Source: Penicillus capitatus
Lineage: Eukaryota > Plantae > Chlorophyta
NCBI GenBank assembly: GCA_965649825.1
Contig: OZ287700.1
Location: 1,426,001-1,490,000, forward strand
Reading direction: 5' to 3'
DNA: 64,000 nt
Shown: piece by piece, positions 10,546 through 63,318 of the stretch
How positions within the stretch are numbered: the first letter of the stretch is position 1
Layout of the letters: every line of letters begins with the position of its first letter
Made by a program: the position numbers and the translations under genes
The notes under the pieces: generated by a model
What the model was told of the DNA's origin: nothing
The model's input: only the letters and a program-made list of their open reading frames with translations
Databases searched by the model: none

Positions 10546-10568
10546 CGCATGGCAACTTCCATTTCATC

Positions 10569-24691: not shown

Positions 24692-24796
24692 CTCGTTGCG
24701 TGTAGACTTGTGGTGGTGGTGGAAACGTCACGTCATCAACGCTGTGTATTCAGCTATTCGAGTTCGACGCTTTCTTGTGCTCAATCACACGTCGGC

Positions 24797-29951: not shown

Positions 29952-29964
29952 GATGACTCGCTCC

Positions 29965-29999
29965 GCGATCGGCGAATGGCACGTCACATCACGCGGTGC
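29965..29999. promoter_or_regulatory. 35-bp block identical to 54246..54280; candidate (bidirectional) promoter element containing CACGTCAC
   Basis: gcgatcggcgaatggcacgtcacatcacgcggtgc is identical at both loci, while the flanking paralogous sequence has many mismatches. It lies 13 bp from the DXR ATG and 65 bp upstream of the XRN1-like ATG. Confidence 0.5.
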
Positions 30000-30326
30000 G
30001 ATTGCTGGCCTTCGAATTTGACGACCGCTCAGAACTCCCGTTCTCTTTCGCGTTTTGTCCAGTAGAACAACGTCGTTCCGGTTGGATGCCTGGCGCTGTT
30101 CAGTTAAACTGGAGAAGGGGCCAGCCTCGAGCCGATTGGACTACCTCCTGTGCGTCATCCCCGGTATGGACGCTTCTTTTCTGACGGAAACGCACCAGTG
30201 CATAGTCACAGACGACGAGTCCTGCTATAAGAAGCTCTACAAGGACACCCCTGTCGTCGACAGTGTCTCTGTTGCATGTTCCCTGACGCGTGTGGCTTTC
30301 AGGTCGAAGCTGGACTTCTCCGTCGA

Positions 30327-30339
30327 CATCGAGGGGGCG
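30327..30339 (+). repeat. 5' target-site duplication CATCGAGGGGGCG
   Basis: Identical 13-mer at 35565..35577; single copy at the empty paralogous site 56422..56434. Confidence 0.95.
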
Positions 30340-30349
30340 GATCAACATA

Positions 30350-32071
30350 ATGCAATCATCTACGCCTCCCACTGGAGGCAGCGGGAGTTTTGCGGCGGCA
30401 GCGCAAAACGCGACCCCGACCGAAAACGCACAACAACCGGCACAAACGACGCGCTTTGGACGACCAACGACGGCCTCGGACTGGGCAGACCAAACGGACG
30501 CGGACGAAAAACTCGGCAGATCGGACAAGCGAGGGTTTTACAGAACGACGATGAGGCGCATACACGGATGTCTCTCGACCCTTGAGCAAGCCGGCGTCGA
30601 CCACCACGCCCTGAAAACGGCCCTCTACCTAATCGAAGCCATGGAGGGAGGCTACGGCATTGGCCAGAGCGACATGTCCCGCGAAGCGCAACAAACCGCA
30701 AGGCCAGCAACAGTCCAGGCGAACCCCCTCTATCAAACGACCATGCCCTCTCTCCTACAACAACAACGAGCGCCAACCGGAGCCGAGACGACCACCCAGC
30801 AAATGCAGCAGACAACCAGAACAGCGTCGTACGCAGAAGTGGCCAAATCCAATTACTTCCCGAGCAGCCCAACAGACCAAGTACCCTGGACAATGGTCGC
30901 AAGACAGCAAAGACCCAAGCCAGCATACGAAACACAAACCCCAGAGCAACAAGCAAGAAGAAGAATCATGAGCGAGATGTGGAAACGCAGCTCACCAGAG
31001 GACCAGAACATGGCCAGACAAGTCTTCATCTCGCCTGTCATCGAGGCGGCCTCGATCAAGCGTCCTACCTACAACATGATGAAGGACGCCCTAACGATTT
31101 GGGCCAAGAACCACGGCGGCCAGGTGCAATACCTTAGGGGGCTCACCTCCGGAGATATGCTACTCCAGCTAGACCAGAACGTGATGACCTATCTCAGGGA
31201 CAACTTTTTCCCTGAGATAGACCTTCACCTACTGGGCTGCTGGCAGCCCAAACCTAGCCATCAAGATACATCGATCCCCAGCGTTGTAGTCGAGGGAGTA
31301 GACCGCTTCCTGTCACACAGAGCGGTCGTGGAAAAACTAAAAGACCCGGAAAATGCGACATGGCTGGGAGTCCAGCCAGAAACATTACAAACGGCGACAC
31401 TCACTTTTGTGAGATTTCACAGAAAAGTGGATGGCAGTGCTCCCGAACCTACCTCCACCGGAAGATTGGTTGGCCCACCAGAAATCATCACCCGCATGGC
31501 CCAGAAGACCGGAATATACGTGGGCTACCCCTGCTATGTCAGAGAATTCGCCCAACAAGAGAAATGGAAGACGGGTAACCGAACCATGGAAGTCGACTCC
31601 ACGAATAGAGGAGCCAAAAGAAACACACAGGAACGAGAAAGGGAAGAGGCAGACGAAATGATCACTCCCAGCAGAGAAGCGGAGCAGCCTCCCGAACCAA
31701 GCACCTCGCGCCGTCGGACAGAGACCCCGCCGCCCATCGATCTGACAACCGAAGAGAACAATCCAACATCAGAAGCTCCCCCGGATAAAACAGCAGAGAC
31801 CCCAACTCAGACAGCGAACCCTCCTGACCGGTCGGCAACGCTCCCACCAACCTTCCAAGCAGAAGAAGAGAACCTCGACCAAATAGCCCGAGCAATCAAC
31901 GATAATCTCTCGGAACTGACGGCCCAGTTCGACCAAGGCGAGCCAAAAACACAGCGCCCAGAGGCGGACCAGCCCCCACCAGAAGGATCAAAACAGCAGA
32001 GCTTGGAACCAGAGAAACGAAGATTCAGCGAGCGCCTAAGAAGGAAGCGCCAAGAAAAAGAAAAACAATGA
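30350..32071 (+). CDS. LINE ORF1 (gag-like nucleic-acid chaperone; no CCHC knuckle visible)
   Basis: First ATG inside the element is at 30350. SYAEV motif, central PSVVVEGVD..VVEKL segment, long acidic/Pro-rich C-terminus; directly precedes ORF2. Confidence 0.8.
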   Translation: MQSSTPPTGGSGSFAAAAQNATPTENAQQPAQTTRFGRPTTASDWADQTDADEKLGRSDKRGFYRTTMRRIHGCLSTLEQAGVDHHALKTALYLIEAMEGGYGIGQSDMSREAQQTARPATVQANPLYQTTMPSLLQQQRAPTGAETTTQQMQQTTRTASYAEVAKSNYFPSSPTDQVPWTMVARQQRPKPAYETQTPEQQARRRIMSEMWKRSSPEDQNMARQVFISPVIEAASIKRPTYNMMKDALTIWAKNHGGQVQYLRGLTSGDMLLQLDQNVMTYLRDNFFPEIDLHLLGCWQPKPSHQDTSIPSVVVEGVDRFLSHRAVVEKLKDPENATWLGVQPETLQTATLTFVRFHRKVDGSAPEPTSTGRLVGPPEIITRMAQKTGIYVGYPCYVREFAQQEKWKTGNRTMEVDSTNRGAKRNTQEREREEADEMITPSREAEQPPEPSTSRRRTETPPPIDLTTEENNPTSEAPPDKTAETPTQTANPPDRSATLPPTFQAEEENLDQIARAINDNLSELTAQFDQGEPKTQRPEADQPPPEGSKQQSLEPEKRRFSERLRRKRQEKEKQ

Positions 32072-35000
32072 TGCCGCGGGCATCCCACCGCGATCACCCA
32101 TACGACTGCCAACCAAGGACAAACACACAAAAAAGCAAAAAGACAATTCGAATCAACCAAATCAACCTGGCCAAGTCCCCTCTGGCATGGGAAGATCTCA
32201 AGATCCAACTCGATCGAGACGAGATTGACGCAGTACTAATCAGTGAACCGCCAAAATGCCTCCAACTGGGACGCACAATCCCCTCGGAATACACATGGAC
32301 GTACCAACAGAACGAATGCACGTGCGGAGCAGGGATTTTGTACAGGAAAAACCTCCGAGTCACGAAGCCGATCGAAGACACCCCACGGATAAACACCATA
32401 GCGGTGAAGAGGGAGAACAATTCAGCTCTGTGGATCTCTTCCTTCTACCTTCAGCCGGAGACACTGGAAGGCCTACACGATGTACAAAAGGTCAGCACAG
32501 AAGTGATCAAGACCGACTCCCAGTGGATACTGGGAGGAGATGCGAATGCACACTCCAGCCAATGGAGTCAATCTGACAACAACGAGTGCGGAAACAGAAT
32601 GGAGGACTGGATACTCGAGAACAACCTCTTGGTGATCAACGACCCGGACAGTGAAGCAACGTTCTCACGAAAGTCCACTCAAGACCAATGGCTCGACATC
32701 ACCCTCTCGACGCAAGGAATCTCGAGGCAGATCACTGAGTGGCAAGTCAAGAAAGAAGCCATCCCCAACTCCGATCACACCCTCATCCACTGGGAGATCG
32801 ATGGCCAAGACGCAAAACTCACCGATCTCAAGCAGAGGAGTTGGGCAAAGACGAACTGGGAAGAATACCGTGATCTTGTACAAGCCTTCCTACCAACTCT
32901 GCCGCTCTCTATAGACTCGGTTGCCCGGCTCGAGGAACAGACGAACCTCCTGACCAAGGCTCTCAGCACCGCCATGAAACTTACCACAAAAATGGTGGAA
33001 CCAAAGAAAATCCCAAGGAACTGGTTCGATCAGGAAGCCCAGAAACTACATAATCGTCTCCGGGCAAGCAAAAAAGGAACCAGTGAACACAACGCCATTC
33101 GGTCTGAATGGAAGGAACTCGTCAGAAACAAGAAACTACTATCCTTCCAGAAGTTCACAGAAAGCACCGACGACCATAACTGTTGGGAGGCATTGCGAAG
33201 ACTCTCCGACCCCAAGAAGCTGAAACCGATCCACTCACTCACCGACCAGAACGGAAGAACAAACGACCCGAAACAAATGGCAGACCTCCTTGCGCAGAGA
33301 TATTTCCCAGAGCTCGAACCGGGAAGAAGAACGGACGAATTCAGACAACAATCAAGTAAAACAAGAGACAAATACTCCCCGACGGACGGCAAACCAAAGA
33401 GAAACACCTGGTCCCACAGAGAGATCTGGGAAGAACTCCAGAGAGGCCGAAGGAAAACAAGCCCTGGACCTGATGACATCCCTTATCAAGCCACCCGAGC
33501 ATGTGCTGACATCCTAACCCCTTGGCTAACCGCAATATACAACGCCATCATCGACACCGGTCACGTACCTCGACAATGGAAGGTTGGCAAGGTATGCAAC
33601 ATCCCTAAACCGGGTAAGAGCGGGGAAGAAGCCAAACATTACAGACCAATCACCCTACTCAATTGTGTCTCGAAGATCTTTGAAACCCTGGTGACCAAGA
33701 AAATCAGTACATGGGCAGAGGACAAAGGGGTCTTGCCAGACAGCCAATATGGCTTCAGGAAAAACCGCACCACAAGTATGCCGCTGGGCAACCTTACCTC
33801 GAAAATCTGGAACTCCCTCAACCGCCGTCAAAAACTGACCTCGGTCAGCGTCGACCTAGAAGGTGCATATGACCGAGTAGTGCCGTCGATCCTGATCGAA
33901 CGACTAGAAGAAGCAGGGCTCGACGAAGACATCGTCAGAGTCGTATGGAACCTGTTGACAGACAGGGAAGCTAACATCACCATAGAGGAAGAGAACTTCT
34001 CCTACCGACCAGAAAGAGGCCTCCCCCAAGGATCGCCCGTGAGTCCGATACTCTATATCTTATACTCTGCGAGCATTCCAAAATACATACCAAACAGCGT
34101 ACACATAAATATGTACGCTGACGACATCGTAATCTACAAAGAAATGACATCCGAGAAAGACGAGACACAACTACAAGAAGCCCTAGACGGACTCCTGAGA
34201 TGGTGTGACGACTCTGGAATGAAGATAAATCCCGATAAAACCCAAACCATAACCTTCCGAAGGAACAGAGACCAGACGCAGCCACATCTCCGACTTGGTC
34301 AACACTCCCTTCAACACACCGAGACAATGAAATACCTCGGCATCACCTTCGATGAGCGAATGTCCTTCGAACACCACTTGAAAGAGAAGACCAGGCAGGC
34401 CACCCAACGAATACATGGCATCAGAAGAATGGCACGAGCCCTATGGGGCGCCTCATCCCACATAACGCGAAGACTATACCAGATGTGCATACAACCACTG
34501 ATGTTGTATGGAAGCGAGATATGGATCACCCGACTAAACACGATTAGAGCGAGCAAGATGTTGGAAAGAATCGGAAGACTTGGTGCCCTTACCATTACGG
34601 GGCTCGATCAAACTACATCAGCGGAAACTGCAATGACACTCGCCTACCTCCAGCCCCTCAGCACCCTCGCTACCGCACAACTACTCAAGTCGGCCCCACA
34701 AACTTACAAAGACCCTAAGAACCTAATACGGCCTCTATCACCGCCGACCCACTGCACCCCAGAAGCAACGCTCCGCTCAGAACTGGAGAGAGTATGGCAG
34801 CACCACCACCAAGAGAAGAACAGAAGACAACGCCCGACAGAGGACGAACTGCATCAAATGCTCAAAAACAGGGATCTATTTGAGCAATGGTATACAGAAT
34901 ACCTAGAAGAGCAAACAAACAGACAATGGATACTGTCAAACAAGAGCCAAAGTCTCAAAAACATAGGATGGCGAAGGATAAACAAAGAAAAGCCCTGGTT

Positions 35001-35352
35001 CGACCACCCGCTGTGGACTAAAAGAAAGACAACTCAAATCAACAGAATGCTCTCAGGACACATCCCGACCCTCACCTACCTGCAATCCCGAGGACGAGAA
35101 GTAGACGATGTCCACTGCCGCCTCTGCAGAGAAGCTCCAGAAACCAGAGACCACCTCCTTCGGTGCCCGGCTCTCAGAAAAACAAGAAGGATGTTATTCA
35201 TGGAAGAAGAGCTCACGATCGAAAAATTCGGACCGCTCCTCCAAGAAGCAAAACTCTTCTACTCATTCGACCAATACTGTTCCCACTGCCACCAATACAT
35301 ATTGCAAGAAACAGGGGGTAAGAACAAAACCCCAAACACCAAACACCAATAA
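32068..35352 (+). CDS. LINE ORF2: apurinic-like endonuclease, reverse transcriptase, C-terminal CCHC finger; no RNase H
   Basis: QINL, ISEP, GGDANAH..W, DITL and SDH (APE); YRPITLLNCVSKIFE, QYGFR, DLEGAYD, PQGSPVSP, YADD and KYLGITFD (RT); CRLCREAPETRDHLLRCP. Confidence 0.97.
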   Translation: MMPRASHRDHPYDCQPRTNTQKSKKTIRINQINLAKSPLAWEDLKIQLDRDEIDAVLISEPPKCLQLGRTIPSEYTWTYQQNECTCGAGILYRKNLRVTKPIEDTPRINTIAVKRENNSALWISSFYLQPETLEGLHDVQKVSTEVIKTDSQWILGGDANAHSSQWSQSDNNECGNRMEDWILENNLLVINDPDSEATFSRKSTQDQWLDITLSTQGISRQITEWQVKKEAIPNSDHTLIHWEIDGQDAKLTDLKQRSWAKTNWEEYRDLVQAFLPTLPLSIDSVARLEEQTNLLTKALSTAMKLTTKMVEPKKIPRNWFDQEAQKLHNRLRASKKGTSEHNAIRSEWKELVRNKKLLSFQKFTESTDDHNCWEALRRLSDPKKLKPIHSLTDQNGRTNDPKQMADLLAQRYFPELEPGRRTDEFRQQSSKTRDKYSPTDGKPKRNTWSHREIWEELQRGRRKTSPGPDDIPYQATRACADILTPWLTAIYNAIIDTGHVPRQWKVGKVCNIPKPGKSGEEAKHYRPITLLNCVSKIFETLVTKKISTWAEDKGVLPDSQYGFRKNRTTSMPLGNLTSKIWNSLNRRQKLTSVSVDLEGAYDRVVPSILIERLEEAGLDEDIVRVVWNLLTDREANITIEEENFSYRPERGLPQGSPVSPILYILYSASIPKYIPNSVHINMYADDIVIYKEMTSEKDETQLQEALDGLLRWCDDSGMKINPDKTQTITFRRNRDQTQPHLRLGQHSLQHTETMKYLGITFDERMSFEHHLKEKTRQATQRIHGIRRMARALWGASSHITRRLYQMCIQPLMLYGSEIWITRLNTIRASKMLERIGRLGALTITGLDQTTSAETAMTLAYLQPLSTLATAQLLKSAPQTYKDPKNLIRPLSPPTHCTPEATLRSELERVWQHHHQEKNRRQRPTEDELHQMLKNRDLFEQWYTEYLEEQTNRQWILSNKSQSLKNIGWRRINKEKPWFDHPLWTKRKTTQINRMLSGHIPTLTYLQSRGREVDDVHCRLCREAPETRDHLLRCPALRKTRRMLFMEEELTIEKFGPLLQEAKLFYSFDQYCSHCHQYILQETGGKNKTPNTKHQ

Positions 35353-35564
35353 AAGAAAGAGCATGCAAACAGCAGCCTCGTTAGACCATCGGACTATGAA
35401 AGAGCACCCACAGCGGGAACGAGCAATCTCGGACAAATCAACAATTCTAGTTCTACAAACAATCCCCAATTGACAAAGACACTTCCCTTGTAGCTCCTCA
35501 CAGGAACCGGGTCATATGCCCCAGGCGGTACCCCCTGTGTTGTAACCCAATTCATCATCATCAT

Positions 35565-35577
35565 CATCGAGGGGGCG
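35565..35577 (+). repeat. 3' target-site duplication CATCGAGGGGGCG, preceded by (CAT)4 tail
   Basis: Sequence reads ...aacccaatt-catcatcatcat-catcgagggggcg-tggaac. Confidence 0.95.
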
Positions 35578-37130
35578 TGGAACGACCAGGAGAACAAGCT
35601 CCTGATCCGTCCTTTCAACTACTATCGGATCACGAAGACGATCGGCAGGTTCAAGGGCGTGCAGAAAGAGATCTGACCGGATCAGGCCCTCATCGACGAC
35701 GACTTCAATCACAACTTCGTCCCGAATCACCGTCGCGCTCCGCAGCAGCACCTCTCGTGTGAAACGTGCGATTTCGTGCAGAGAGCAAAGCGAAGAGCTA
35801 CTGCACGTCGACGATCAACAACTACCAGGATGTGAAGTGCTCCTGCGGATCGACAGTCCTGTGGTCACGGCCTGTTCGCGAAAGGACATCCCCTTGGCAG
35901 AAAGGTTCCGCACTGTCGAGCACCATGTCCTGAACTTCGACCGTCGATTGCATCAGGTCCTTCGCTGCCGTTCCCGCCCGGTTTCCCGACACTCGATACC
36001 GTCCTGCAAGTCAGATGGCCGTTCCAACGGCGCGCGACTCAGTGTTCTGTGCAGTTGAAGTGCTGCATGATGCAAATGAAGTGCGACCGCTACGCTCGAC
36101 AGAGTGAGCGCGAGAGTCTTGTCATCGAAGTGTCCGGAGACAGCTACAACTGGCCCGGGGGTGCCAAGAAGGCGATTCTGCGACCAACCGACGGATGAAC
36201 AGATCCCCTGTTCCCTGCGACAGGTGTTTGACAGTCTCAAGGAGCAGGTGGTGTACATCGGCTACCCCTGCAAGACACGTGCCACCGTCATCGGAACCAC
36301 CGATCCATGGGCGACGTGCTACGTCCCTGGCAAGTCCCAGAGATCTCTGTACGGCGGAAACCACACGCGGGAGCATCAGATTCTCTCCACGCAGATGAAG
36401 CAGGACCTCTGGGTCGAAAGCGCGATCAACCCTGGTCGATGTGGTATCCTTCTGCACGTCATCGTCCAAGGAGACCTGAAGGAACGCGAGGTGCACTATC
36501 CTCTCCAGATTCGTCTGGAACGCCTTCGCTCGTTCGATGGTCGTGGAAATTGCTACGCAGCTGACGTTGATTTCGTCCGACGGGGGATTTCTCTCCGCCT
36601 ACCAGTGCTACTTCCCGCCCGAACAGATCGACACGATCTCCGTCGCCCAGACCTACACACGTTTTCGCTTTGGTCCCTTGGCATTGCAGTAATGTCTGTG
36701 CGGGTGTTGGAAATGAGAGCGTGCAGAACGAGATCCAGTCGTCTGTTCTGGGTCCCGTGGTTTCGGAAATGATGCTTTTGCCCGCGGACTCGGTAACTGT
36801 CAATGCCGCCTCGGCCTTGGATTCGAGCTAGACGACGTATATGGAGCTGACTCTACGCACATCCTGTAGTCTCTGCATTGACTCAGGTCTGTCTCCTACG
36901 TCTGTCTTTCCGCGTGTGCGCGGCCGCGGCGCACGTTTGTCTGAGCATCCCCGTCAATTCACGTGGCAACAGGACCATCGTCTGAAGACGTTCTCGCTTT
37001 CGTACTGCATCGTCCTGTCTTTCTTGCTCGATTAGGAATAGCACCTACGATGCCATTTCCCGACTAAAGCTTTACTTCGAAAAGACCGTCGTCATCTTAC
37101 CGTGTACGGTATTTCATCCGAGCGTGCACT

Positions 37131-50325: not shown

Positions 50326-53282
50326 ATGCAGGTCTTCAACAAGTTAGCAAAAGGTCCGGCGTCTGCAGGCGTCGATAGAGAACAACAGCATCTGTGTTCT
50401 GCCAGGTGCTGCAACTTTGGGAGCTGGAGAAAATGCCTCCGTTCTCGAGCAGCTGATGCACCGGGTGAAAGAGACGTCTTCTCTCGAGGAGAAGCGGATG
50501 GCGCTGAACGACATCAAAGAACTTCTGCAGAGCCATTCAGAAGTCTCATTGTGTCCATTCCTGCTCGTTCTCGATCGAATCCTGTCCATCAGGTCAAGGC
50601 AGATTTCGGATCTCTGGGCGGCATCTCTCTAGTGGTCGAGATTTTGGCCGAAAGAGAAGACCTCGAGCTCATTCAGATGACACTTGAGCTGCTGGCGATC
50701 GCACTCGCGGAAGAAGACACGAAGGCAATCACTGTCACTCACTGCACGGCAGGCACAACAAGGAGTCTGTGTGTGAAGACAGACAACTGCGACGCCTTCT
50801 GCAAACTGCGAATTGTTCGTTCAGTCGCTCGACCATCTGACCATTGTGCTTTCCCTGTTGGATCCGGAACCAACCGGCGTGCACGATTTCTATGTCTACT
50901 ACCACGCCGTCCAGATCCTGAACTGCTGCTTGAAAACCGGCCTCTATAAGCTCCAAGTGAAGCCCGCCAATTCGCGGGATGCTTCTTGGGACAGACACGG
51001 TCCAGGAAGTGGTGCACAGACGAGAGGACGGATTGAAGGGTCTACTAAGTTTGCTATCTGAACGCGAGGCGATAAGAAACGAAGTTCTGCTGATTCTGAT
51101 TCAACTGACCGCCAATCATCCTTCTCTGCAAGGATCTGCCGCCAGAGGCGGAATCTTTGCGAAGCTCTTTGACATCGTGAAGGGAGAAGGCGGCCCAGAG
51201 GGCAGCATCGTTGTTCGGGATTGTCTGGAGCTGATGGCGCAAGTTCTCCGAGACAACGAAACGACGCACCAGATTTTCAGGTTCGTCTGTCGACAAGCCT
51301 CCCACGAGACGACTTCCCACAGGGAAGAAGGCATGGTGGAGCCCCTGTTGAGATTCCTGGAACTTGTGAATGTCAGCTCTTCGGGCGTCGAATCGCTGAA
51401 GAGCGCGAACCAGAACGTGACCCAGCAACGCATCGATCATCTCAGAATGGCACTGAAGCTCGCCGAGATACTGGTTTCTGCCTGTTCTCTACCGGCGTCC
51501 CCTCATTCCGCCTCAGGTTCATGAGAATGAGACCGACATGCAGGAGGCTCACATAGCAAACTGCCAATGGATGAATCAATCCGACTGTCTTCCTGTTCTC
51601 TCGCAACTGTGCCTCAACCAAGGAGGCGAGTCGAAGTGTGTCTCTCTGCTTCAGTGGCTGTGGGATGTCGTAGGCGTGAGAGATGTGGAAGTGCGCGTCA
51701 TGTCCTTGCGATGCATGAGCCGTGTTGTTCGATTCGTCCCCGATGCCAAGAAGCTCCTTGTCAAACTCAGAGTTTTCCTCGACGGTCAACCCGTCGAAGC
51801 ACTCTTGGTCAGCGAGAGATTCCATTCCGTCTGCGTGCGTCTTCGCGAGCAGCTGTGTTGGATAGGCGCTGCTAAGGATGGCCCTCGTTGCTCATGAGCG
51901 GCAAGAGTCTCTAGCAGCGTACGGCGTGCTCCAAAGCTTCTACGATTCCAACCGAGAGGCGCAGGAGCGTACCTTCTCTTCTCAGATCTCCTTCGAGGGA
52001 CGCCAACCCACGGATCATGCTTTTCTGACTGAGCTGCTGAATGCACTGGACACATGCCGCGAAGGATCAGAATCGGGCAGACGTGCCGCACAAGTGATGA
52101 ACGGTTCTATTGGCGGCCAAGTGCACGGTGTCGTCTGCCTTTCAGATCCTATCCTGCATCCTTCGCGACAACCACGTCCTGCAAACGGCTTGCGTCACCC
52201 AGCAGGTGACTCTGCCCCATGGACAAAAATCGGGTCGAGTGCTTTTCTGGTACAAATGGCTGTTCGGGGATAGACGCTGAGTGACAGATTTGGTTAGGCT
52301 GATGGATCTGCTCTCGGAGAGTGTCCGCTTTAATTCCAATCCTGGAATCTGCGATGCTTTGAGCCTGTGCGTCATGAATACGCTGGAGGGATGTCCTGCT
52401 GCCGTAGAAGCACTTCTGCAGATCGAATCCTGCGTGTCCCTCTTGGTCACACATCTTCAGAAGACGGTAGAGGATACCATCGACACACCGAGCTGGAGAC
52501 TCTCGGGGATCCATTTCGTTTCGCTCATATTTGTCGCATGTCTCACGACTGTCATTGAGTGTCCCAGTTATGCAAGTGAAGCAAGCATAGCGTTGGGTGA
52601 TAAGTGCTGCAGTGCGTTTCTTTGTTAGATTCTCAGGCGATGCGTGAGTATCTGAAGAACGTGGTGATGGGATCCGTGGGCGTGGACAATTTCATCCTTT
52701 TCTTGAAGGCAGCCCATGACAAGACCAAAGGTCCAGCACACGTGGATCTGCATCGGAAGCTCGCCCACATGTCGGCCGTTCTGCACTCTTACCTGCAACC
52801 CAGCCAAAGCCGTACAGCCGGGGAGGCACTTCAGCCAGCAGCGCCCGTTGTCCAGCAGGGAATAGCCGGTTCGGAAAAACAGGCAGGAGCAGAGGAAGAC
52901 ACGACGGTGCAGAAACTGCAGATCGAGTTGAATGCTACGAAGACAAGGCTTCAGCAAGTGACGGAAGAGCTTTCATCCTTTAAGCAGCAACGGCCACAGG
53001 AAGGCCCACTCCAAGAAGGACTCACCCAACAGGAAGCCCTCATTCAACAACTCCGTCTCCAGGCACGAGAAAAGAATAATCGTCTTCTCCTCAGTCCATT
53101 CTTTACAGATTTCGGATCTCAAGGGACAATTGGAGGCGTCAGTGGATAGCGAGACAAAGAACGAGATGTTGGTTTGTTTGGGCATTGAACATACCAAAGT
53201 TCAAGTCCTTTCTGCTAAACTCTTTGAACTTGGCTACGATCCTGATGCACTTCTCGCAGCAGAAATGCAGAAACAGTTGTGA
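50326..53282 (+). CDS. USO1: USO1/p115 (golgin candidate 6) vesicle tethering factor; multi-exon
   Basis: Head domain DFYVYYHAVQIL, REAIRNEVLLILIQLT, IFAKLFDIVKGEGGPEGSIVVRDCL; coiled coil; C-terminal MLVCLGIEHTKVQVLSAKL. Confidence 0.85.
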
Positions 53283-53457
53283 TTCACAGTTCCCCAGACG
53301 GCGACTGTCTTTCCATCTTAAAGTCCCATTCGATGGATATCGCGCGCGTGTCCATCGATAGCCATCGGAACGCTCATCATTTTTTTACTCGACCCAATTC
53401 TGGAGCAACGCCTTTGCCAAAGCATCCACATTCCGCCTTGATGCCACCATTATAGCC

Positions 53458-54202
53458 ATGTTCGCGATCAGCACACCATGTAGACGTCCTGTGGCGCGAG
53501 GCCACTGGCGTCGCCCTTCGAGACGTGTCGTCCGCCTGCGGGCCGAGAACCTGAAAGATGTTCTGCAGAGAGGTGCGGCGTGAGAATTGTCTGCGTTGCT
53601 CGGTTGAGATGTGGGTGGATGAAGGAGACTTCGACCCCGATCCTGCTTACGTGGAGGGCGGAGACTTTCTCAGAAGCATCGGGATGCGAAACCAGGCAGA
53701 GATCAGTCGGATACTGGACGTGGCGATGAATCCAGATTCCCTCTTTCTCCCTCCAGTCCAACGCCGCCGATCGACGGCCAGCGTTCGATCATCCCCGCTC
53801 TATCTGCGATGCGTCATCTCTGTCCTCCAGGCGCGGAGACTGAGCGTCGAGGACGACATGAAGCCGGTCGTGGATTACCTCCGTGGCCTGGGCATCGAAG
53901 ACGATCAAATCATCAAGGCATGACATGGGATGGATTGACATGCGTGGTACGGTTCGTGTCTGTGGTTTTAGATGATCGAGCAGGTTCCCTATTTGCTGGG
54001 GTACAGTCCTGAGGAGCGCATTCGCCCCGTTTTGGACTACCTCAGCTCCGTCGGTATTGAAGACCCTGCCCAGATCATCGCCAAACGACCGTCTCTCTTG
54101 GGATTGGACGTCGATCGGAATCTCAGGAAGATGGTGGATTACCTGAAATCCAATGATTACGAAATGGATCAGATCGTGAAATGGTTAGAGACATCTCTTT
54201 AA
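53458..54202 (+). CDS. Small organellar mTERF-repeat protein; multi-exon
   Basis: R-rich transit peptide from ATG 53458; mTERF-like repeats MKPVVDYLRGLGI, PYLLGYSPEERIRPVLDYLSSVGI and PSLLGLDVDRNLRKMVDYL. Confidence 0.8.
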
Positions 54203-54345
54203 AAACACCAATTCCACTTTTTATCGACAGACTGTCAGCGCATCAGCGATCGGCGAATGGCACGTCACATCACGCGGTGCTTCATCAACTGGCCCTCGGA
54301 TTTGACGACCGCTCAGAACTCCCGTTCGGTTTCGCGTTTCGTCCA

Positions 54346-57300
54346 ATGGGTACGACGTCGTTTCGGCGAAGTGCCCATCGCAATTGTGTTCTCCGTAGAC
54401 GCTCGTTTTGACAGATGGATGTGCGACCGATACCGCACGACGCTTCAGCAGGTGGATCCTGTCGGATACCCTCCAACGGATCACCTGTACGTCAATCTGG
54501 ACGACGTTCTTGCCAGGTCCGTCTCCGCGGCAAGCGCCCTCGATACATTCCCGTCCCGCAGCTACGTCAATTGGACGGAGGCGGCGTTGAAGCAGTCGGA
54601 AGACGCATTGCTCCTCTCCGTTTCGAAGCACATCGAGTTTCTCGTCGAAACGATCAGGCCGCAGTCGCAGCTATTTATCGCTGTCAGCGGTATGTCCATC
54701 AACGGCACCGACTGTCCCATCACCGCAAGATCTTGCGCGATGTGACGAGCAGGCGTGTTGCCTGTTGCTTTCCTGAATACCCAGCGAAGGCAGTGCATCT
54801 ACAACAAGGGAAAGGCAAGGTCTTGCGATTGCGATGACGGCAGCCTGAGAGTGTGCGGTGTCAGATCATGGACGATGCGTTTCGCCAGTCGGTGCACGCG
54901 GAGAGCACGGAGGATCTGTTCAACATGAATGCTTTGATGCCGGGGACGCCGTTCATGGAGAGACTGGACGCCCACCTGCTGTTCTTGATCCGACACAACA
55001 TGGCATACGTCTTCGAGTGGCAGGAACTGAAGGTCATCTACTCAGGTTCGTCTGTCGCGTGGGAGACGGCGACCGCAAAGAGTGAGACTGACTCAGGGTC
55101 TTCGATCGCGGGGGACGCTTCGTTCAAGATCTTCGAAGAGATGCGCTGCGCGCGCCAGGAAAAAGGAGCGACAGATGTGCTCACGCACGGGGTGTACACA
55201 ACGCAGCACGACGCTCCCTTGCACGCGTTGGCCACGAGGGAGCCGTACATCTACCTCGTCAAGGAGAAACGCTGTCTGCAGCCGTCGTACCTTCTCTGAT
55301 GCACCCTTTCGATTCTGTGCGGTAATCTCGTAGAGAGCGAGATGCGCAGACCACTCGGGACGAGCTCAAGGAGGAAGACTTCGTCATCCAGTACATGAAG
55401 TGCGCGTCTCCGAAGAGGCCGTTCACCGATCCGGCCATTGCTGTGCTACTAGTCTGTTCAGGGAGTGCTGGGAACAGGAGCTCCAGCATCTGAACGCAGA
55501 GGTGGATGCGGAACGCAGTCTGGACGATTTCCTGCTCTTCTGCACGTTCCTTGGAAACAGGGCCATTCCCCGTATCCCTCTCCGATCCACCGTCTCGCTC
55601 TCACCGCGATGGTGTCGCAGGCATTCCGACGCTGCATCTGCTGGAGGGGAGTCTGGATGAGCTGCTGGACTGTTACAAGGAGTTTCTGCGTCCCACGCTC
55701 TGCTCGCAGGGCTACAGCGGAACGGAATGCGGGCAGTCGGCCGTGCCCTATCTCACGAACGCAGACCGAGCGATCAATCTGATCAACTTCGAGGCATTCA
55801 TCCACCTCATCGGCGCAGAGAACAGGGAACTCGACCGTCTTCGGTTCCGGGAGAAGCTGCAGGTGTCCGGAAAAGCCCCCAGGAATCTCACTCTCATTCT
55901 CCCCGGCGCCGCCGGCTTGATCTACTACCACGACGGTCCGTACGAGTGGTGGAAGAACTGGTACTACACGATGAAGCTCAAGATCGAGGAGCAACACAAA
56001 GAGGCGATAAAGGAGGCGGCGTCCTACTTCTCGAGTGCCCTGATCTGGTACTACGAATACCTGACGAAGCAGACTGTGGATTGGGATTGCGCGTACCACG
56101 AGCTCTATGCACCCACGCTGTCTGACCTGGCATCCATCTCGGAGCACGAAGGTCGAGTCCTCTCTTGCTTCTCTTGTCGACGACGCGATCGCTGTCCAGT
56201 TAAACTGGAGAAGGAGCCGGCCATGAGCCGATTGGAGTATCTCCTGTGCGTCCTCCCCGGCGTGGACGCTTCTTTTCTGCCCGAAACGCACCAGTGCATA
56301 GTCACAGACGACGAGTCCTGCTATAGGAAGCTCTACAAGGACACCCTGTCGTCGATACTGTCTCTGTTGCATGTTCCCTGACGCGTGTGGCTTCCAGGTC
56401 GAAGCTGGACTTCTCCGTCGACATCGAGGGGGCGTGGAACGACCAGGAGAACAAGCTCCTGATCCGTCCTTTCAACTACTATCGGATCACGAAGACGATC
56501 GGCAGGTTCAAGGGCGTGCAGAAAGAGATCTGGCCGGATCAGACCCTACTCGACGACGGCTTCCAGCACATCTTCGTCCCGAATCACCGTCGCGCTCCGC
56601 AGCAGCCATTCTCGTGTGAAACGTGCGATTTCGTGCAGAGAGCAAAGCGAAGAGCTACTGCACGTCGACGATCAACAACTACCAGGATGTGAAGTGCTCC
56701 TGCGGATCGACAGTCCTGTGGTCACGGCCTGTTCGCGAAAGGACATCTCCCTGGCAGAAAGGTTCCGCACTGTCAAGCACCATGTCGTGAACTTCGACCA
56801 TCGATTGCATCAGGTCCTTCGCTGCCGTTCCCGCCCAGTTTCCCGACACTCGATACCGTCCTGCAAGTCAGATGGCAGTACCAACGGCGCGCGACTCAGT
56901 GTTCTGTGCAGTTGAAGTGCTGCATGATGCAAATGAAGTGTGACCGCTACGCTCGACAGAGTGAGCGCGAGAGTCTTGTCATCGAAGTGTCCGGAGACAG
57001 CTACAACTGGCCTGGGGGTGCCAAGAAGGTCGATTCTGCGACCAACCGACGGATGAGCAGTTCCCATGTTTCCTGCGACAGGTGTTTGACAGTCTCAAGG
57101 AGCAGGTGGTGTACATCGGCTACCCCTGCAAGACACGTGCCACCGTCATCGGAACCACCGATCCATGGGCGACGTACTACGTCCCTGGCAAGTCCCAGAG
57201 ATCTCTGTACGGCGGAAACCACACGCGGGAGCATCAGATTCTCTCCACACAGATGAAGCAGGACCTCTGGGTCGAAAGCGCGATCAACCCTGGTCGATGC

Positions 57301-58789
57301 GGCATCCTTCTGCACGTCATCGTTCAAGGAGACCTGAAGGAACGCGAGGTGCACTATCCTCTCCAGGTTCGTCTGGAACGCCTTCGCTCGTTCGATGGTC
57401 GTGGAGATTGCTGCGCAGCTGACGTTGATTTCGTCCGACGGGGGATTTCTCTCCGCCTACCAGTGCTACTTTCCGCCCGAACAGATCGACACGATCTCCG
57501 TCGCCCAGACCTACACACGTTTTCGCTTTGGTCCCTTGGCATTGCAGTAATGTCTGTGCGGGTGTAGGAAACGAGAGCGTGCAGAATGAGATCCAGCCGT
57601 CTGTTCTGGGTCCCGTGGTTTCGGAAATGATGCTCTCGCCTGCTGACTCGGAAACTGTCAATGCCGCCTCGGCCTTAGATTCGAGTTACTCGACGTATAT
57701 GGAGCATCAGATCTACGACGACGAACCGGGTCAGGAAGGAGATCTGGCAGCGACGCCTGCTGAACCAGTGCCCTTGGCACCGGCCGCTGCCTCCGAATTG
57801 CCGCCAAGCACGGCTGTTAACAATGAGGAACAGAAGCGGGACGAGCTTGCAGAAGACGAGGCCATACAGCGCGCATACGAAGAAGAGATCCGACTGGAGC
57901 TGAACAACTTCTCGGAGCGCACCGCCTTAGGTCTCCCTCGAAGAATGTCGGTCGAAAGAAACATCCCGTTTGTGTCTCTCTAGAGCCCTGGCAGCCGAGC
58001 GGTCTTTCAGATGCCTTCGTTCCGGCAGCAGCTGTCGTTCCGGCTCCCTTGGAGCCAGAGACCGAAGAAAAGGTAGAGGAGGAGGAGGAGAAGGCAGAAG
58101 ATGAAGTCGAAGAAGAGAAGACAGAAGAGCCAGAAGCGTCTCGAGCGGAGATCCCAGACGACACACAAGATTTCCTTCAGGCTGTGGACGTCGTCCGCGA
58201 GTTGGACATCTCTGAGGATGCATTCGTGAAGATCTTGGGCCATTGTTCGTTGAAGACCCTATCAGGTCAGCATCGGCTCTCCTTCCTGCAATCAACCATC
58301 TTCCGTCCAGGCGATTCAGTGGAGATCGGTCTGGGACTAGAGACTGGAGGGTTTCCGGTACTCTGGATCGCTCCGGAACTGAAGACGGTTCTGGAGAACT
58401 ATGCATCGGAGCATCCGTGGGTCTTCTGCATGTTGGATGATCCTTCACTTCCAGATGGCCGCTACGCCATTGATGGCGTCACAAACAACTCTAAGCTGGA
58501 AGCACGATACCTACGAGCTGTTCAACAGTTTCTCCAGAGCATCGATCCGACGCATCTTCGAACGGTAAATGGCTTGATCTCACTGTGGCTTTCAAGGTGT
58601 ACTGCCTCCCAGGTTGAACGATCTAACGAATTGGCGGATAACAAGCCGGAGCAGACAATTCAGGAAAGTGTGAAAGATCAGGCGCCCAGCGAGGCCCAGC
58701 CTGCGCAAATGAAGGTCATTCATTCCATTAGTTTCCTGTTCTGTTGTTCAAGGAAGGTGTGTCTGCAGTTTGCTCCTTTCGACGATTAG
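54346..58789 (+). CDS. XRN1: XRN1-like 5'-3' exoribonuclease homolog lacking catalytic residues (pseudonuclease); multi-exon; 3' end approximate
   Basis: A 4-nt first exon (ATGG, intron 54350..54398) gives MDARFDRW. Aligned blocks: NALMPGTPFMERL, YAPTLSDL, EYLLCVLP, VYIGYP and the XRN1 C-terminal EIGLGL...LENY...PWVF region. Confidence 0.85.
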
Positions 58790-60000
58790 GAATAACGAAT
58801 GTGGCGATATCATTATCGCTACGATTGCTGTTGTTATGCATCTTACCTTTTGCAGTGGATGTGCGTTCTTGTGTGGTTTGGTCTCGAATGTTGTGAAGGA
58901 ATGGATGAACGCTCGTTGATACAGTTGGATCGTCTTGTGTGGTTTCAACTGGACCGTTTGAAAAGAATTTGCGAATCTTTCGCTGAACAGTCAACCGACG
59001 TCATCCGGGTATCCGAGCGAAGCACTCATGCAGGTGCTGAAGTTGGGAGAGTTGAAGTTGGACGTTAAATACTCTGCCACGTCGTAATTCGTTCTCCTTT
59101 CGTGGCGCCGGGCGAACCCGAACCGGGAATCTTCGCAGATCGCGGCAAACTGATTCCGTGCCCCTTCCGGCGGGGTCTGGTAACGTCCGGAGGAGCTAAG
59201 ATCTGTGTTTCAAGACGGATCCCCTTTCGTCGCGGGAGGTCGCAACACGTGCCCCTGCAAAAGAACACAAACAGATGCTCAACTAACGAAATTGCACACA
59301 GCCAAGCATCTGCCTCCGAACTTTACAAGCTGCTCGTTTCTCTTGTCGAAGAGTTCGAGGTCCAGATTGGACACTCCACCGACGCTCGACCATTTCTTCA
59401 ACTTCTTCTCAGCTGCATCGCGTTAGATAAGCCTCCGGCGTCTGCTCAATCGCTTCCACTGTCACAAACCAGTCACAGCGTTTTAGGAGCCTGCTTGCTG
59501 CTATCTTCGAAGACATGTTAACGGCTGAAGACCAGTAGAACTCGATTCCCCAATTCGAGTCGAAGTGCCTGTGTCGATGGAATCCAAGCTGGTTTCCTAA
59601 TCGGAACGAAGCCTCCCAAAGAACCCACAATTGCTGTTTGCTTGCTCACTCTGAAAGAGTCTGCAGAGAATTGGACGCCGGATAAATCCGAGAAGATTGC
59701 TCCCATACGGACGACGCCTCGCTGCATTCGTAATCAGTCACTTGTTGAAGAACAGACGCGAAAAAAAGGATAGCCCAGAAACCTGACAAACATTTCAGTT
59801 TCATGCATCACCTCGTCAGGTTCGCGCCCTAACGCTGACTGTCCATGTCTGTTTTGTGAAACCATCGTGAAGCCGATGACGAGGACGTTCTCTTCGACGG
59901 GCGTCCTGATATTGAACTTCACGGTGATGTTGATTGCTTCCAGCTAAGCGCATTCGTTGTGCGCGTTCAAGGCGCGTATTTAAACGCACTACCAACAAGA
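58728..60000 (-). CDS. Possible multi-exon gene of unknown function
   Basis: Short coding-looking segments bounded by splice-like sites (e.g. DAAEKKLKKWSSVGGVSNLDLELFDKRNEQL|gtaaag; WEAINITVKFNIRTP). No model could be completed. Confidence 0.2.
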
Positions 60001-60062
60001 GAGAAGCGTCATCAACAACACTTTCTGTGTCGGTGCGCATGTTTCTATCGGCATCGTTTCCA

Positions 60063-61573
60063 ATGAACAATACATTGTCTTCCCAGAGCGTCGCTGTGGC
60101 ACTAAGGAATTTCATAATCCTGATTGTATTCCTTATCCGCCCTGCTGTCTCTCAGAACGAATGCCTCTGTTCAACGACTGGTCGGAGCAACGGTGTCGAA
60201 GTCGATAAGCCGGGATGCATGTTACAGTCCGAGTCTGCAACGGAGCCAACCTGCTATGCCCAGAATTCAACCAACTGCAAAGAACACATGGAATCCATTG
60301 AGTATCCTGGTGCTGCTCTCATTCCGTGTTCCGTCGAAGACGCCTTGTACACGGCGGCTGAATTGAATGATGTCGATTCGATTGTCCGATTTCGCGAGCT
60401 CGGAGTTTCACTTGATACTAAGAGAAACGTTTCTTACGGCCCTTTCGGATATGAAGTCTTCTCGGTTATCGAGTATGCCGTTGTCTGGGGCAGCTTTGAT
60501 GTCATCGAAGATATGATTGTCAATGATGATTACAATTGCAACGACCACGTTTCTCTTTTCAACAGACTTTGTCGTCTGTCGAATGAGAAACACTGTCATG
60601 AAGACGACGAAAGAAGGAAAGCAATGCAGGGTTTCCTCAATATGTTTGCCGGACTAAGTTGTGATGGTGGGGTAAGCGATTCGCATACAAGGAACAGAAT
60701 CGATTACTCTGCTGCAGGCCATTGCTGACATTTTTGTGGAACCAGCACCGGGCGGGAAGCTAATGGAAATACTGGCAATGGCTGAATCTGTAGGTGTAGA
60801 TGCTCCCTGCACTGAATACACCTATTTTGCTTCATTGCGCACATCACAAGATAACGGGTATCATCACATTTGCGGCGGCGTGCTCGTTTCGAAGAACGCG
60901 GTACTTACTGCTGCACATTGTGTGGATGGAACCGGAGGTTTGAACGTCCGACTTCTTGTGCTGAATGCACGCTCCAGTGCAGGCAACGGGGGTTCATGTA
61001 CTCCGGATTTCGAAGTGCGCCTTTCTTTCTAACGACAATCAAAGTGAATCCGTTGTTCTGCAGAGCCGAAGCGTGGCATCAATCGAGATCCATCCAGATT
61101 GGTATAAGGGAAAAAATCCCCAGGCCCTAGGCAATGGATATGATTTAGCCCTGATCAAGCTGAATAAACCATCTGGTAAGAAGCCGGTCAAGCTTCAGAA
61201 AAAGAACGCCAGAACGGGGAATACCTTGAATTTCGTCGGACTCGGAAGGCAAAGCTCTCGTGGCGGTTTTTCGTCTACCTTGCAAGTGGGCAGCGTGTCT
61301 GTTCTCGACAAGGACAACTGCGAAGAAGCGTACAACACAGTCTTCCCAAAGAGTGTCCTCTGCAGTGACAGTGCATCAGAGTTCTGTGACGGAGATCAAG
61401 GAGGACCGTTGATTGATACGACATCGAAGAAAGACAAACTGGTGGCCATTGCACATTTGAGAGATCCATCAGATGACTGCGGCACGTCGGACTTCCCTGG
61501 ATTATACGCCGACATAAGGCAGTCGGGGAGCTGGATTAAGAAGACGTTGAAGAAGTTCTCCAAAAAATCTTGA
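60063..61573 (+). CDS. Secreted fusion protein: signal peptide, Cys-rich module, degenerate ankyrin-like segment, trypsin-fold domain with catalytic Ser replaced by Gln
   Basis: Introns 60672..60717 and 61015..61063 join ORFs 59934, 60736 and 60965 in frame. ICGGVLVSKNAVLTAAHC, YDLALIKL and DGDQGGPL. Confidence 0.8.
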
Positions 61574-63318
61574 AGATCAGCGCTTTCGTTTGCACCTTTG
61601 AATCAAGCCATACTGTAAAGTCCTCTTTTAGCTTTTATCATGTCTGCCTGTCTGACTGCCTTTATGAAATTCTGAACACGCGCAAACTACATTTCTGAGT
61701 GTCACTGTACCAGTTTCACTTCCATTAATCTTTCATCATTGTGAGTGAACGTTCTCGTTCGTGCGCTATTGGATGAAGCCTTTGGTGTGTCTCCTCTGCT
61801 TGAGGCAGAACAGATAGTCCTCGTCGGACGTTTCTAACACCTCCAAGAAAGACTCCGCTTGACACGATCCCTAACATTCGGATGCAGAGCTCAGGTGTAG
61901 CTGAGTGTTGCAGTCGTCGAGAGTGGCCTGCGAGTCAACATGCCTTCGTTCGACCTTGCTGGCCCCATTAGATTGCCATGGTGCGGAAATCGACGACGCG
62001 ATCATCCACGTCGAGACGTGTGCATAACGGCCACCTGCGGACGCGCATGGCATTGAAAACTGGGCAAGTTCTGAGCCTATATAAACAGAACGTCTGTTAG
62101 ATGAGGACCAAGGAACACCTTATCGGTTGTGGTGTTTCATCGACGGCGTCGTTCGGCGACAAACCAAATTACTGAACTAACTTCAAAGGAGCACGAAGAA
62201 GACAAGTGTTTGACTGCAGAGTAGTGACCTACCGCACTCCTATCCCTTGCGCAGAGAATCGCTGGATCGTCTTTTAGGGATGTTTTGATCTTTGGCCGTG
62301 AAGGAGAATAGCAATGCGGGTTGATAAAACACTTACAGAAGGAAGCATTGACCGATTTCGTGACGGAGGTTGAACCCAATGGTTTCACAGTGTCGAGTCA
62401 GCAGAATAAGCGTCGGAGACATTTTCCAGTCAGTGAGATCGATCTCTTTTCTGTCGCCGATCACACACACATTCTGATTCGGAGAATGAACAATATTGTA
62501 CAGGTATGATTCAACGGGACAACGAATTCTGGATTTGCATCCTACTCGGAACTAAACAGCTTAGGGACCCTCTGTCGTTCGGATGGCTCGATAGAGATGG
62601 CACAGCAGCGTTGGCAGCTTCACCAAAACAGTTGATTGACGCTCATCATATGATAAAGCGTTTGTGTCAGTGATTTGTAAGTGCACTTGGGATTCGATCC
62701 GTCGTTTCGGCAACGAACTTACTCTGTTCTTTCATCACTTTCACGAGGCTCCCTAGATAATCGGTCCAGCGTTGCAAGAAGATTCTAGATTTGGCCATTC
62801 GCTGAAATCTCGCCAGTTTTTCGCACGGGCTGCTTTTGTCGATGCTCTTGTTCTCTTTATGTCCGTTTCTTCGCAAGGACGTTTATTTTCTCTCACTCCA
62901 GTAAAACAGAGGATATTTAGAAAACGATCAAACCCCCTTCTGTGGGCTGCTGCTGAGGTGAGGAAAGCCTCCTGGTTTGTGACCGAGGCTGCGAAGGAGA
63001 TGAATGGATGTCAACCACGGAATACTCTGTTTGATGTGGGGTTTAGCGAGTAGCCTTTGATCAGCACATGGTGGAAACAGCGCTATCCTTCTTCGCGTCT
63101 ATCATCGCAAGACGTCTGTTGGTTAAGAGAGACAGGGATATCCATCAGATTCGTTATTCTGTTGCAGATAGACGCACAAGCGATATCAGCAAAAATCGGA
63201 GATCTCTCTAATAATTGAAAGGGTCTTTTGCAGCTGATAGATTCCATGCGCAAATTCCGAGCCATCATTTGCAGTCCTTTTCGTTTGTAGCCCTCGGTGT
63301 CGTCGACCCGTTTCAAAA

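Follow-up and report, generated by a model that had tools for sequence, protein, structure and literature searches.

A maintained XRN1-like gene with a substituted active site, encoding a probable pseudonuclease, in the siphonous green alga Penicillus capitatus

Introduction

Can a member of the XRN1 family be maintained after the residues that define its catalysis have been replaced? This question is raised by a gene on the plus strand of a 64,000-nucleotide (nt) stretch of Penicillus capitatus DNA (contig OZ287700.1, positions 1,426,001 to 1,490,000; hereafter the window), which a preliminary description, made from the letters alone, had read as a full-length XRN1 homolog with a dismantled active site. 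XRN1 is among the most conserved eukaryotic RNA-decay enzymes, and it has long been proposed to act non-catalytically as well, in the buffering of transcription, in translation and in the function of microtubules, roles that mutagenesis can hardly uncouple from catalysis. The analysis reported here indicates that the gene probably encodes a maintained but catalytically inactive XRN1-family member (pseudonuclease), nuclear-encoded in a bryopsidalean (siphonous) green alga. The limits first assigned to the gene proved exact, with the start ATG at 54346 and the stop codon ending at 58789. The gene and the regions of its product are as follows:

54346..58789, plus strand: XRN1-like gene (putative pseudonuclease), 19 exons, 18 introns, product of 1171 amino acids (aa)
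54404..55269, plus strand: XRN_N (catalytic, PIN-like) domain, residues 4-237, Pfam PF03159, E 3.2e-30
55508..56431, plus strand: XRN_M (Xrn1 helical) region, residues ~283-541, Pfam PF17846, E 2.1e-27
56828..57644, plus strand: D1-like (PAZ/Tudor) region, XRN1-specific, motifs FPSFPTLDTV, SERESLVIEV and KEQVVYIGYPCKTRATVIGTTD
58040..58153, plus strand: Glu-rich low-complexity linker, of different length between species
58151..58561, plus strand: D2/D3-like (winged-helix zone) segment, motifs LDISEDAF...VEIGLGLE...LENYASEHPWVFCML

Replacement of catalytic residues

In XRNs, seven conserved acids bind the metals, a strictly conserved Arg/Lys/Gln/Arg pocket reads the 5′ monophosphate, and an invariant His and an invariant Trp, both required for processivity, stack nucleotides (PMC10590902). 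The corresponding residues of the window protein were obtained from printed phmmer alignments to the Xrn1 structures 6q8y, 3pie and 9e70, and are listed below in yeast numbering, followed by the window residue:

D35: N34, codon 54494-96, motif DHLYVNLDD
H41 (stacking His): A40, codon 54512-14
D86: S98, codon 54686-88, motif AVSGVLPVAFLNTQRRQC
K93: F105, codon 54770-72, same motif as D86
Q97: Q109, retained in the window
R100: Q112, codon 54791-93, same motif as D86
R101: C113, codon 54794-96, same motif as D86
E176: D186, codon 55114-16, motif GDASFK
E178: S188, codon 55120-22, motif GDASFK
D206: Q216, codon 55204-06, motif YTTQHD
D208: D218, retained, codon 55210-12, motif YTTQHD
D291: R300, codon 55559-61, motif GNRAIP

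Every motif quoted in the preliminary description recurs in the spliced product, and each aligns with Xrn1 of yeast, K. lactis and human in the way proposed there. The seven metal-binding acids (D35, D86, E176, E178, D206, D208 and D291) are represented by N, S, D, S, Q, D and R, respectively, which leaves five of the seven metal-coordinating positions non-acidic, E176 as a conservative Asp, and D208 as the single identical acid, as had been noted before. The 5′-monophosphate pocket (K93, Q97, R100 and R101) reads F, Q, Q and C; its earlier depiction as gone is correct for three of the four residues but not for Q97, which is retained. The Trp that aligns with yeast W541 (GLQW motif) is likewise retained as W446 (codon 56046-48) and would, judged by its numbering, correspond to Drosophila Trp540; its partner His41 is Ala.

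For a comparison with the remainder of the core, 70 alignment columns that are invariant across six diverse canonical XRNs were considered, comprising 12 active-site and 58 other columns. The window protein retains 2 of the former versus 36 of the latter (p = 0.005), indicative of a loss of conserved residues that concentrates on the active site. Core motifs that are retained include PGTxFM, LATxEP, W..YY..K and YAP..SDL. The core has an isoelectric point (pI) of 5.1 and a net charge of -26, compared with pI values of 6.1-7.6 for canonical cores; the whole protein has a pI of 4.8 and a net charge of -71, and its D1 region is basic (pI 8.7).

Selection and intactness of the gene

Two further genomic copies of the intact gene were compared with the window, namely a sister-species locus (L001, on a 1.68-Mb contig of ENA ERZ26696514) and a locus from a second individual (L004, ENA ERZ25074695), the latter being assigned to the window species on account of its 99.1% DNA identity across window positions 44257-64000 and the same mTERF gene upstream. 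No frameshift or stop was found in any of the three copies, in agreement with the earlier description of a frame that stays open over about 4.4 kb. The sister-species locus is collinear with window positions 21180-30060 (87% identity) and then carries a full-length ortholog, which aligns to 54246-58879 at 82.6% and consists of an open coding sequence (CDS) of 1185 aa with 84.5% protein identity to the window. All 18 donor/acceptor pairs are conserved in this ortholog, including a GC-AG pair, and all indels whose length is not a multiple of three fall within introns. The ten substituted active-site positions and D208 are identical in both species; the one difference concerns Q97, the pocket residue retained in the window, which is Glu in the sister species.

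The ratio of nonsynonymous to synonymous divergence (dN/dS) between the window and the sister species, determined by the Nei-Gojobori method, is 0.19 (dN 0.082, dS 0.439). This comparison had been suggested beforehand as a check, and its outcome is not near 1. By region, the following dN/dS values were obtained:

XRN_N: 0.18
XRN_M: 0.14
D1-like region: 0.14
acidic linker: 0.28
C-terminal part: 0.25

The copy from the second individual exhibits 24 synonymous and 27 nonsynonymous codon differences from the window; only 2 of the nonsynonymous differences occur within the first 600 residues, and most lie in the Glu-rich linker. In the sister species, this linker (L001 positions 12579-12680) contains a 36-nt in-frame expansion of a VVEKAEE-like repeat unit.

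These comparisons show a gene under purifying selection rather than a pseudogene, and its conservation suggests that it is expressed and spliced. The proposal of a maintained non-catalytic protein, as put forward in the preliminary description, is thus supported by the dN/dS value of 0.19, the conserved splice sites and the active-site-focused losses.

A decaying duplicate of the same gene

The window also contains a truncated, decaying paralog, which is composed of three segments identified by self-BLAST:

29962..36847, plus strand: truncated paralog at the ancestral locus, adjoining the 1-deoxy-D-xylulose 5-phosphate reductoisomerase (DXR) gene
29962-30081: matches 54243-54366 at 85%, start codon lost
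30094-30339: matches 56190-56434 at 93%
35565-36847: matches 56422-57705 at 96%

This copy retains ~120 bp of leader plus first exon with a mutated ATG, ends at the equivalent of 57705, and lacks the equivalent of 54367-56189, i.e. the entire nuclease domain. It is interrupted by a 5.2-kb long interspersed nuclear element (LINE; 30340-35564) flanked by a 13-bp target-site duplication, CATCGAGGGGGCG. In the sister species the intact gene directly follows DXR, and the truncated copy therefore occupies the ancestral site, the intact mTERF-adjacent copy being a relocated duplicate. Among named organisms, the closest counterparts of the window DXR gene (28466-29590, minus strand) are those of Ostreobium (76%) and Bryopsis (73%), with other green algae and plants ranking lower. 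Together with the XRN homologs, this places the alga within or near the Bryopsidales.

Differences between the two copies were polarised using the sister-species ortholog as outgroup. Since the duplication, which is recent, the intact copy has acquired 7 synonymous and 2 nonsynonymous changes and no stops, as opposed to 6 synonymous and 13 nonsynonymous changes, including 2 stops, in the truncated copy (Fisher's exact test, p = 0.04). With its stops and lost start codon the truncated copy qualifies as a pseudogene, and it illustrates neutral decay over the same period, a pattern that the intact gene does not follow.

Relatives and probable age of the loss

An exhaustive HMMER search with window positions 55623-56345 (exon 8 to exon 9, with the in-frame intron read through) matched 12 proteins, among them an ENA-contig fragment at 88% identity, fragments at ~47%, Ostreobium CAD7697866.1 and Bryopsis GMH42531.1. 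A word-indexed homolog search with the draft N-terminal protein returned no match at E <= 1e-3, a word-indexed profile search (8000-candidate prefilter) returned only close fragments, and a scan of JGI metagenomes for more relatives found none. An additional locus (L002; Logan SRR33785045, 42.5% G+C) encodes an ortholog, read from its exons, that is ~45% identical to the window protein. The suspicion that the protein belongs to a family is thereby confirmed, as relatives with overlapping disabling substitutions are present in Bryopsis sp. KO-2023, Ostreobium quekettii and L002. Their residues at the catalytic positions are:

D35: window N, L001 N, L002 D, Bryopsis D, Ostreobium D
H41: window A, L001 A, L002 S, Bryopsis R, Ostreobium R
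D86: window S, L001 S, L002 G, Bryopsis D, Ostreobium D
K93: window F, L001 F, L002 F, Bryopsis F, Ostreobium L
Q97: window Q, L001 E, L002 E, Bryopsis E, Ostreobium E
R100: window Q, L001 Q, L002 R, Bryopsis K, Ostreobium K
R101: window C, L001 C, L002 K, Bryopsis R, Ostreobium R
E176: D in all five
E178: window S, L001 S, L002 V, Bryopsis K, Ostreobium K
D206: window Q, L001 Q, L002 Q, Bryopsis A, Ostreobium A
D208: window D, L001 D, L002 D, Bryopsis D, Ostreobium E
D291: window R, L001 R, L002 R, Bryopsis D, Ostreobium D

Loss of K93, E178, D206 and His41, together with E176D, is common to all five lineages, and further losses are lineage-specific with differing replacements. Such shared core losses followed by dissimilar later ones are expected if activity was lost once, early, with other catalytic residues drifting afterwards, and catalysis was probably lost before the Bryopsis, Ostreobium, L002 and window lineages split.

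The Bryopsis protein (GMH42531.1, BSKO_10450, annotated as 'hypothetical protein') and the Ostreobium protein (CAD7697866.1, EukProt EP00803_P000997, annotated as 'unnamed protein product') are members of the same clade, each with a collinear arrangement of N, M, D1 and D2/D3 regions. Both are 31-32% identical to the window protein, and collinearity among the window, sister-species, Bryopsis and Ostreobium proteins extends across the core and D1. These two members share with the window K93F/L, E176D and the loss of E178, D206 and His41, the replacements in their case being E178K, D206A and His41R. Unlike the window protein, they have kept D35, D86 and D291, and they probably possess an SH3-like segment; disordered inserts of great length bring the two proteins to 1630 and 2440 aa, respectively.

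Domain architecture and affiliation with XRN1

Searches of the spliced protein against Pfam yielded 105.8 bits for PF03159 (cut-off 22.9), covering profile positions 5-241 of 241, and 96.6 bits for PF17846 (cut-off 23.8). In a phmmer search of all PDB chains, 14 XRN structures were matched (E 4e-40 to 8e-26), the best being yeast Xrn1 6q8y (4e-40), K. lactis Xrn1 3pie (1e-36) and human XRN1 9e70 (2e-35), with weaker values for Xrn2/Rat1 structures (1e-28 to 1e-32). The same ranking was obtained with a family profile (6q8y 9e-106, 3pie 1e-100 and 9e70 7e-97, versus ~1e-78 to 1e-84 for Xrn2/Rat1), positions 1-737 of which match residues 1-758 of Drosophila Xrn1 2y35 in one stretch. The alignment of family profile A1 covers residues 481-868 of yeast Xrn1 and 486-800 of the K. 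lactis enzyme, and thus runs through D1, a domain of PAZ/Tudor type (PMC10590902); within D1 the family reads 'vvyvgyPfkrkarv' opposite yeast 'VIYTRWPYLRESKL'. The higher scores of Xrn1 structures relative to Xrn2/Rat1 and the alignment through D1 argue for an XRN1 rather than an XRN2 affiliation.

The Pfam XRN1_D1 model was not detected in the window protein alone, and matches weakly in the Bryopsis and Ostreobium homologs (E 5e-4 and 8e-5, respectively). For the D2/D3-like segment, family profile A2 was aligned by hhalign to a canonical XRN1 (P0009, residues 839-1004), with a probability of 95.4% and an E value of 1.7e-8 over ~123 columns; these residues fall between the Pfam XRN1_D2_D3 and SH3_12 matches of P0009. 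XRN1_D2_D3 itself was matched below threshold, in the Bryopsis and Ostreobium relatives only, and PDB searches with the C-terminal half, as sequence or as C-terminal family profile, retrieved no XRN1. The window protein has no Pfam SH3_12 match, whereas P0009, used as a positive control, is matched at 2.6e-13, and it ends ~40 residues after the D2/D3-like segment, which leaves no room for an SH3-like D4 domain. The preliminary term 'full-length' therefore goes too far, in that D1 and a D2/D3-like segment are detectable but D4 is absent.

An AlphaFold2 model of the Ostreobium member, based on a 23-row alignment, reached a predicted local distance difference test score of 80-95 in the core and a predicted template-modelling (TM) score of 0.66. 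The model is closest to Drosophila Xrn1 2y35 (E 5e-40) and has a TM score of 0.82 on human XRN1.

Predicted function and alternative explanations

Under the pseudonuclease interpretation, catalysis and 5′-monophosphate recognition would have been lost in the common ancestor of the Bryopsis/Ostreobium/L002/window clade, and the window lineage would then also have lost D35, D86 and D291, constraint having gone. The window protein would be unable to hydrolyse RNA by the two-metal mechanism or to select 5′-monophosphate ends, and may instead represent a non-enzymatic binding module that employs the preserved XRN1 fold and the D1-D3 surfaces. Its partners would more likely be protein or ribonucleoprotein (RNP) components of the 5′-3′ decay and translation machinery than RNA 5′ ends, as the loss of the phosphate pocket and of the stacking His, along with the acidic core, favours a protein or RNP adaptor over a clamp for 5′ ends. 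An adaptor role, or competition with active XRN enzymes, is proposed here tentatively.

A number of observations weigh against this interpretation. D208 is kept, E176 is a conservative Asp, and the window, sister-species and L002 proteins carry two new acids beside position 35 (NLDD/VDVDD), which together make a remodelled metal site conceivable, though improbable. The adaptor or competitor role is weakly inferred, solely from lost residues and net charge, and the absence of the SH3-like domain, which is essential in yeast, implies that the surfaces available for partner binding may not be the same as in XRN1.

As a broader and equally speculative scenario, the Bryopsidales might carry an ancient XRN1-derived pseudonuclease clade as their only remaining XRN1-type gene, with XRN2-type enzymes performing cytoplasmic 5′-3′ decay and the pseudonuclease having adopted a new, selected non-catalytic role in mRNA fate, e.g. 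ribosome or RNP binding, or keeping long-lived mRNAs protected or stored in giant single cells. If true, no earlier pseudoenzyme would be known from the XRN family, and nature would have supplied a separation-of-function allele of XRN1.

Among the alternatives, the one that survives best, yet appears unlikely, is a non-catalytic RNA-binding protein that holds single-stranded RNA, threaded or clamped, in the former substrate channel regardless of the 5′ phosphate, and so stores mRNAs or shields them from active 5′-3′ exonucleases in the giant coenocytic cell. Such binding would be in keeping with the retained Trp that aligns with the stacking Trp, the retained channel motifs (PGTxFM, LATxEP, W..YY..K and YAP..SDL) and the PAZ/Tudor-type D1, which is basic here, but the stacking His has been lost along with every pocket residue other than Q97, and the negative charge of both core and whole protein (-26 and -71) disfavours strong nucleic-acid binding.

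A remodelled hydrolase, in which D186, D218 and the new D36/D37 would form the metal site of a nuclease or phosphoesterase with altered specificity, is improbable to a greater degree. D208 is kept in every lineage but Ostreobium, which has Glu, the E176D change is conservative throughout the five, and acids occupy positions 37-38 in the window, L001 and L002, versus canonical N-G. However, five of the seven acids are non-acidic in the window, and the lineages have lost different subsets (D86 to S/G; E178 to S/V/K; D206 to Q/A), indicative of relaxed constraint rather than redesign. Single substitutions of metal-binding acids abolish yeast Xrn1 activity, and the crystallised K. lactis Xrn1 (3pie) is itself recorded as carrying E178Q.

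Finally, although the family does shed dead copies (the truncated window copy and a fragment elsewhere in the genome, see below), a recently inactivated, decaying pseudogene with a frame open by chance is effectively refuted by a 3.5-kb CDS with 18 introns that is intact in three genomes, by a dN/dS of 0.19 at a dS of 0.44, by the 2 stops and 13 nonsynonymous versus 6 synonymous changes of a true pseudogene copy over the same period, by disabling substitutions held in common with relatives at ~31-45% identity, and by DNA divergences of 17% (L001) and 0.9% (L004), which exclude that these are assembly duplicates of one sequence.

Comparison with known systems

The window protein has the same fold and domain order (XRN_N, XRN_M, D1 and a D2/D3-like segment) as XRN1/Pacman/Kem1 (2y35, 3pie, 6q8y and 9e70). 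It differs in that five of seven catalytic acids are non-acidic, K93, R100, R101 and the stacking His are replaced, the core is acidic, and both the SH3-like D4 and the long disordered C-terminal partner-binding tail are lacking. It would accordingly be classified as belonging to the XRN1 lineage by descent and fold, while failing the defining catalytic features of that family.

XRN2/Rat1 and plant XRN2-4 have the XRN_N + XRN_M core in common with the window family, with structural matches at a TM score of ~0.7, but score lower with the family profile (~1e-80 versus 1e-100 or better for XRN1). XRN2-type proteins are active enzymes that are not known to have the D1 region to which the window family aligns, and in land plants they perform both nuclear and cytoplasmic 5′-3′ decay. 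An analogue is found in Ssd1, a fungal RNase II-family pseudonuclease, in which a processive exoribonuclease fold is no longer catalytic but lives on in a regulatory protein that binds RNA. Ssd1 belongs to an unrelated fold family (RNB, 3′-5′), and its RNA binding has been experimentally demonstrated, whereas the window protein is known from sequence. Full-text literature searches retrieved no description of an XRN-family pseudoenzyme, matches to 'pseudonuclease' being concerned with Ssd1, which is in line with the earlier statement that no XRN1 pseudoenzyme has been described.

A clade that lacks catalysis and 5′-phosphate recognition yet is under purifying selection would signify that the XRN1 scaffold itself performs a function on which selection can act, for which the implied surfaces are the core fold, D1 and D2/D3, and not the pocket or the SH3-like domain. 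It would also add a major exonuclease family to those with pseudoenzyme members. Annotation by domain content alone would probably label the Bryopsis and Ostreobium proteins as '5′-3′ exoribonuclease'.

Gene model and splice sites

The window DNA is nuclear eukaryotic, with ~52% G+C and very short GT-AG introns, and three-frame translation of 54346-58789 (plus strand) presents a series of open segments with XRN_N and XRN_M similarity. The splice model was built manually and by dynamic programming on codon usage and splice sites, after which boundaries were corrected against the sister-species ortholog:

Exons 1-7, plus strand: 54346-54349, 54399-54689, 54753-54814, 54865-55045, 55097-55283, 55334-55399, 55453-55571
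Exons 8-13, plus strand: 55621-56151, 56200-56347, 56398-56588, 56639-56761, 56814-57028, 57082-57366
Exons 14-19, plus strand: 57419-57518, 57568-57930, 57984-58265, 58320-58564, 58613-58714, 58769-58789 (stop 58787-89)
54815..54864, plus strand: GC-AG intron of 50 nt, AAG|GCAAGG...GTGTCAG
54243..54345, plus strand: conserved 5′ leader or promoter-proximal segment, common to the truncated copy and the sister species

Exon 1 consists of ATGG only, followed by a 49-nt intron, and the protein then continues as MDARFDRWMCDRYR, which aligns to the canonical start MGxPKFFRWxSERYP. An upstream ATG at 54257 was rejected as start, being CTG in the sister species. The 18 introns are uniform in length (48-63 nt, mean 51.6), with acceptors that are nearly all CAG or TAG; such uniform short introns (54350-58768) are probably a genome-wide trait of this alga. 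The GC-AG intron provides the sole boundary pair that joins exons 3 and 4 in frame and is GC-AG in the sister species too (GCAAGT...GATGTCAG); GT-AG introns at 54793-54851 or 54820-54905 were discarded in its favour. The exon 5/6 boundary is ambiguous between introns 55284-55333 and 55288-55349, affecting ~5 residues.

Several other candidate boundaries were replaced. The acceptor at 55461 is unconserved and gave way to 55452. A 120-nt intron at 56694-56813 was revised on the basis of an excess of synonymous differences from the sister species in the correct frame, by which 56694-56761 (68 nt) is coding and the intron is 56762-56813. Near 57931 and 58245, introns of 53 and 54 nt took the place of candidates measuring 80 and 75 nt, and an apparent hydrophobic C-terminal tail (VIHSISFLFCC...) is really a 54-nt intron, the acceptor of which appears as a premature stop in the sister species.

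The leader (54243-54345) is 85% identical to window positions 29962-30081 and alignable to positions 8741-8843 of L001. An mTERF-domain gene (53558-54202, plus strand) stops ~140 bp 5′ of the XRN1-like start codon, and the ~100 bp between this gene and the start codon are 85-91% conserved in the truncated copy and the sister species. Since the leader is conserved even though the upstream neighbour in the sister species is DXR and not mTERF, the duplication brought along its own short leader or promoter. An Rfam search of the window gave no match.

Other copies and neighbouring genes

A third, partial copy of the gene was observed in the same species (L003; ENA ERZ25074695 ctg340425, record 20006-40659, positions 9559-11482). 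It corresponds to window positions 55283-57210 (96.4% identical), has lost one nucleotide from a G run in exon 8, and is located between LRR-kinase-like and starch-synthase-like genes. Together with the truncated window copy, it shows that the gene has been copied at least twice recently.

Directly after the truncated copy, ~1.2 kb (36848-38017) match neither the 3′ part of the intact gene nor the sister-species locus, and synteny with the sister species resumes at 38018-38811 (L001 13667-14461). The LINE within the truncated copy (30340-35564, plus strand) looks recently active. It contains an intact 1094-aa open reading frame (ORF) 2 with an APE-type endonuclease, RVT_1 and zf-RVT, and an open ORF1 of 593 aa without a Pfam match; A is strongly enriched on its coding strand (AT skew +0.31 to +0.38), and the element terminates 3′ in a (CAT)n run and not in poly(A).

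Further genes were noted in the window, which have no bearing on the XRN1-like finding:

208-4480: receptor-like protein (periplasmic-binding, NCD3G, ephrin-receptor-like cysteine-rich region), followed by a TRP-like channel ORF
8342-11681: TMEM120 and DUF1350 genes
17957-20905: protein with a CH domain and a long array of IQ motifs
24594-27652: Rab3GAP catalytic-subunit-like gene
42424-44064: 546-aa ankyrin-repeat ORF

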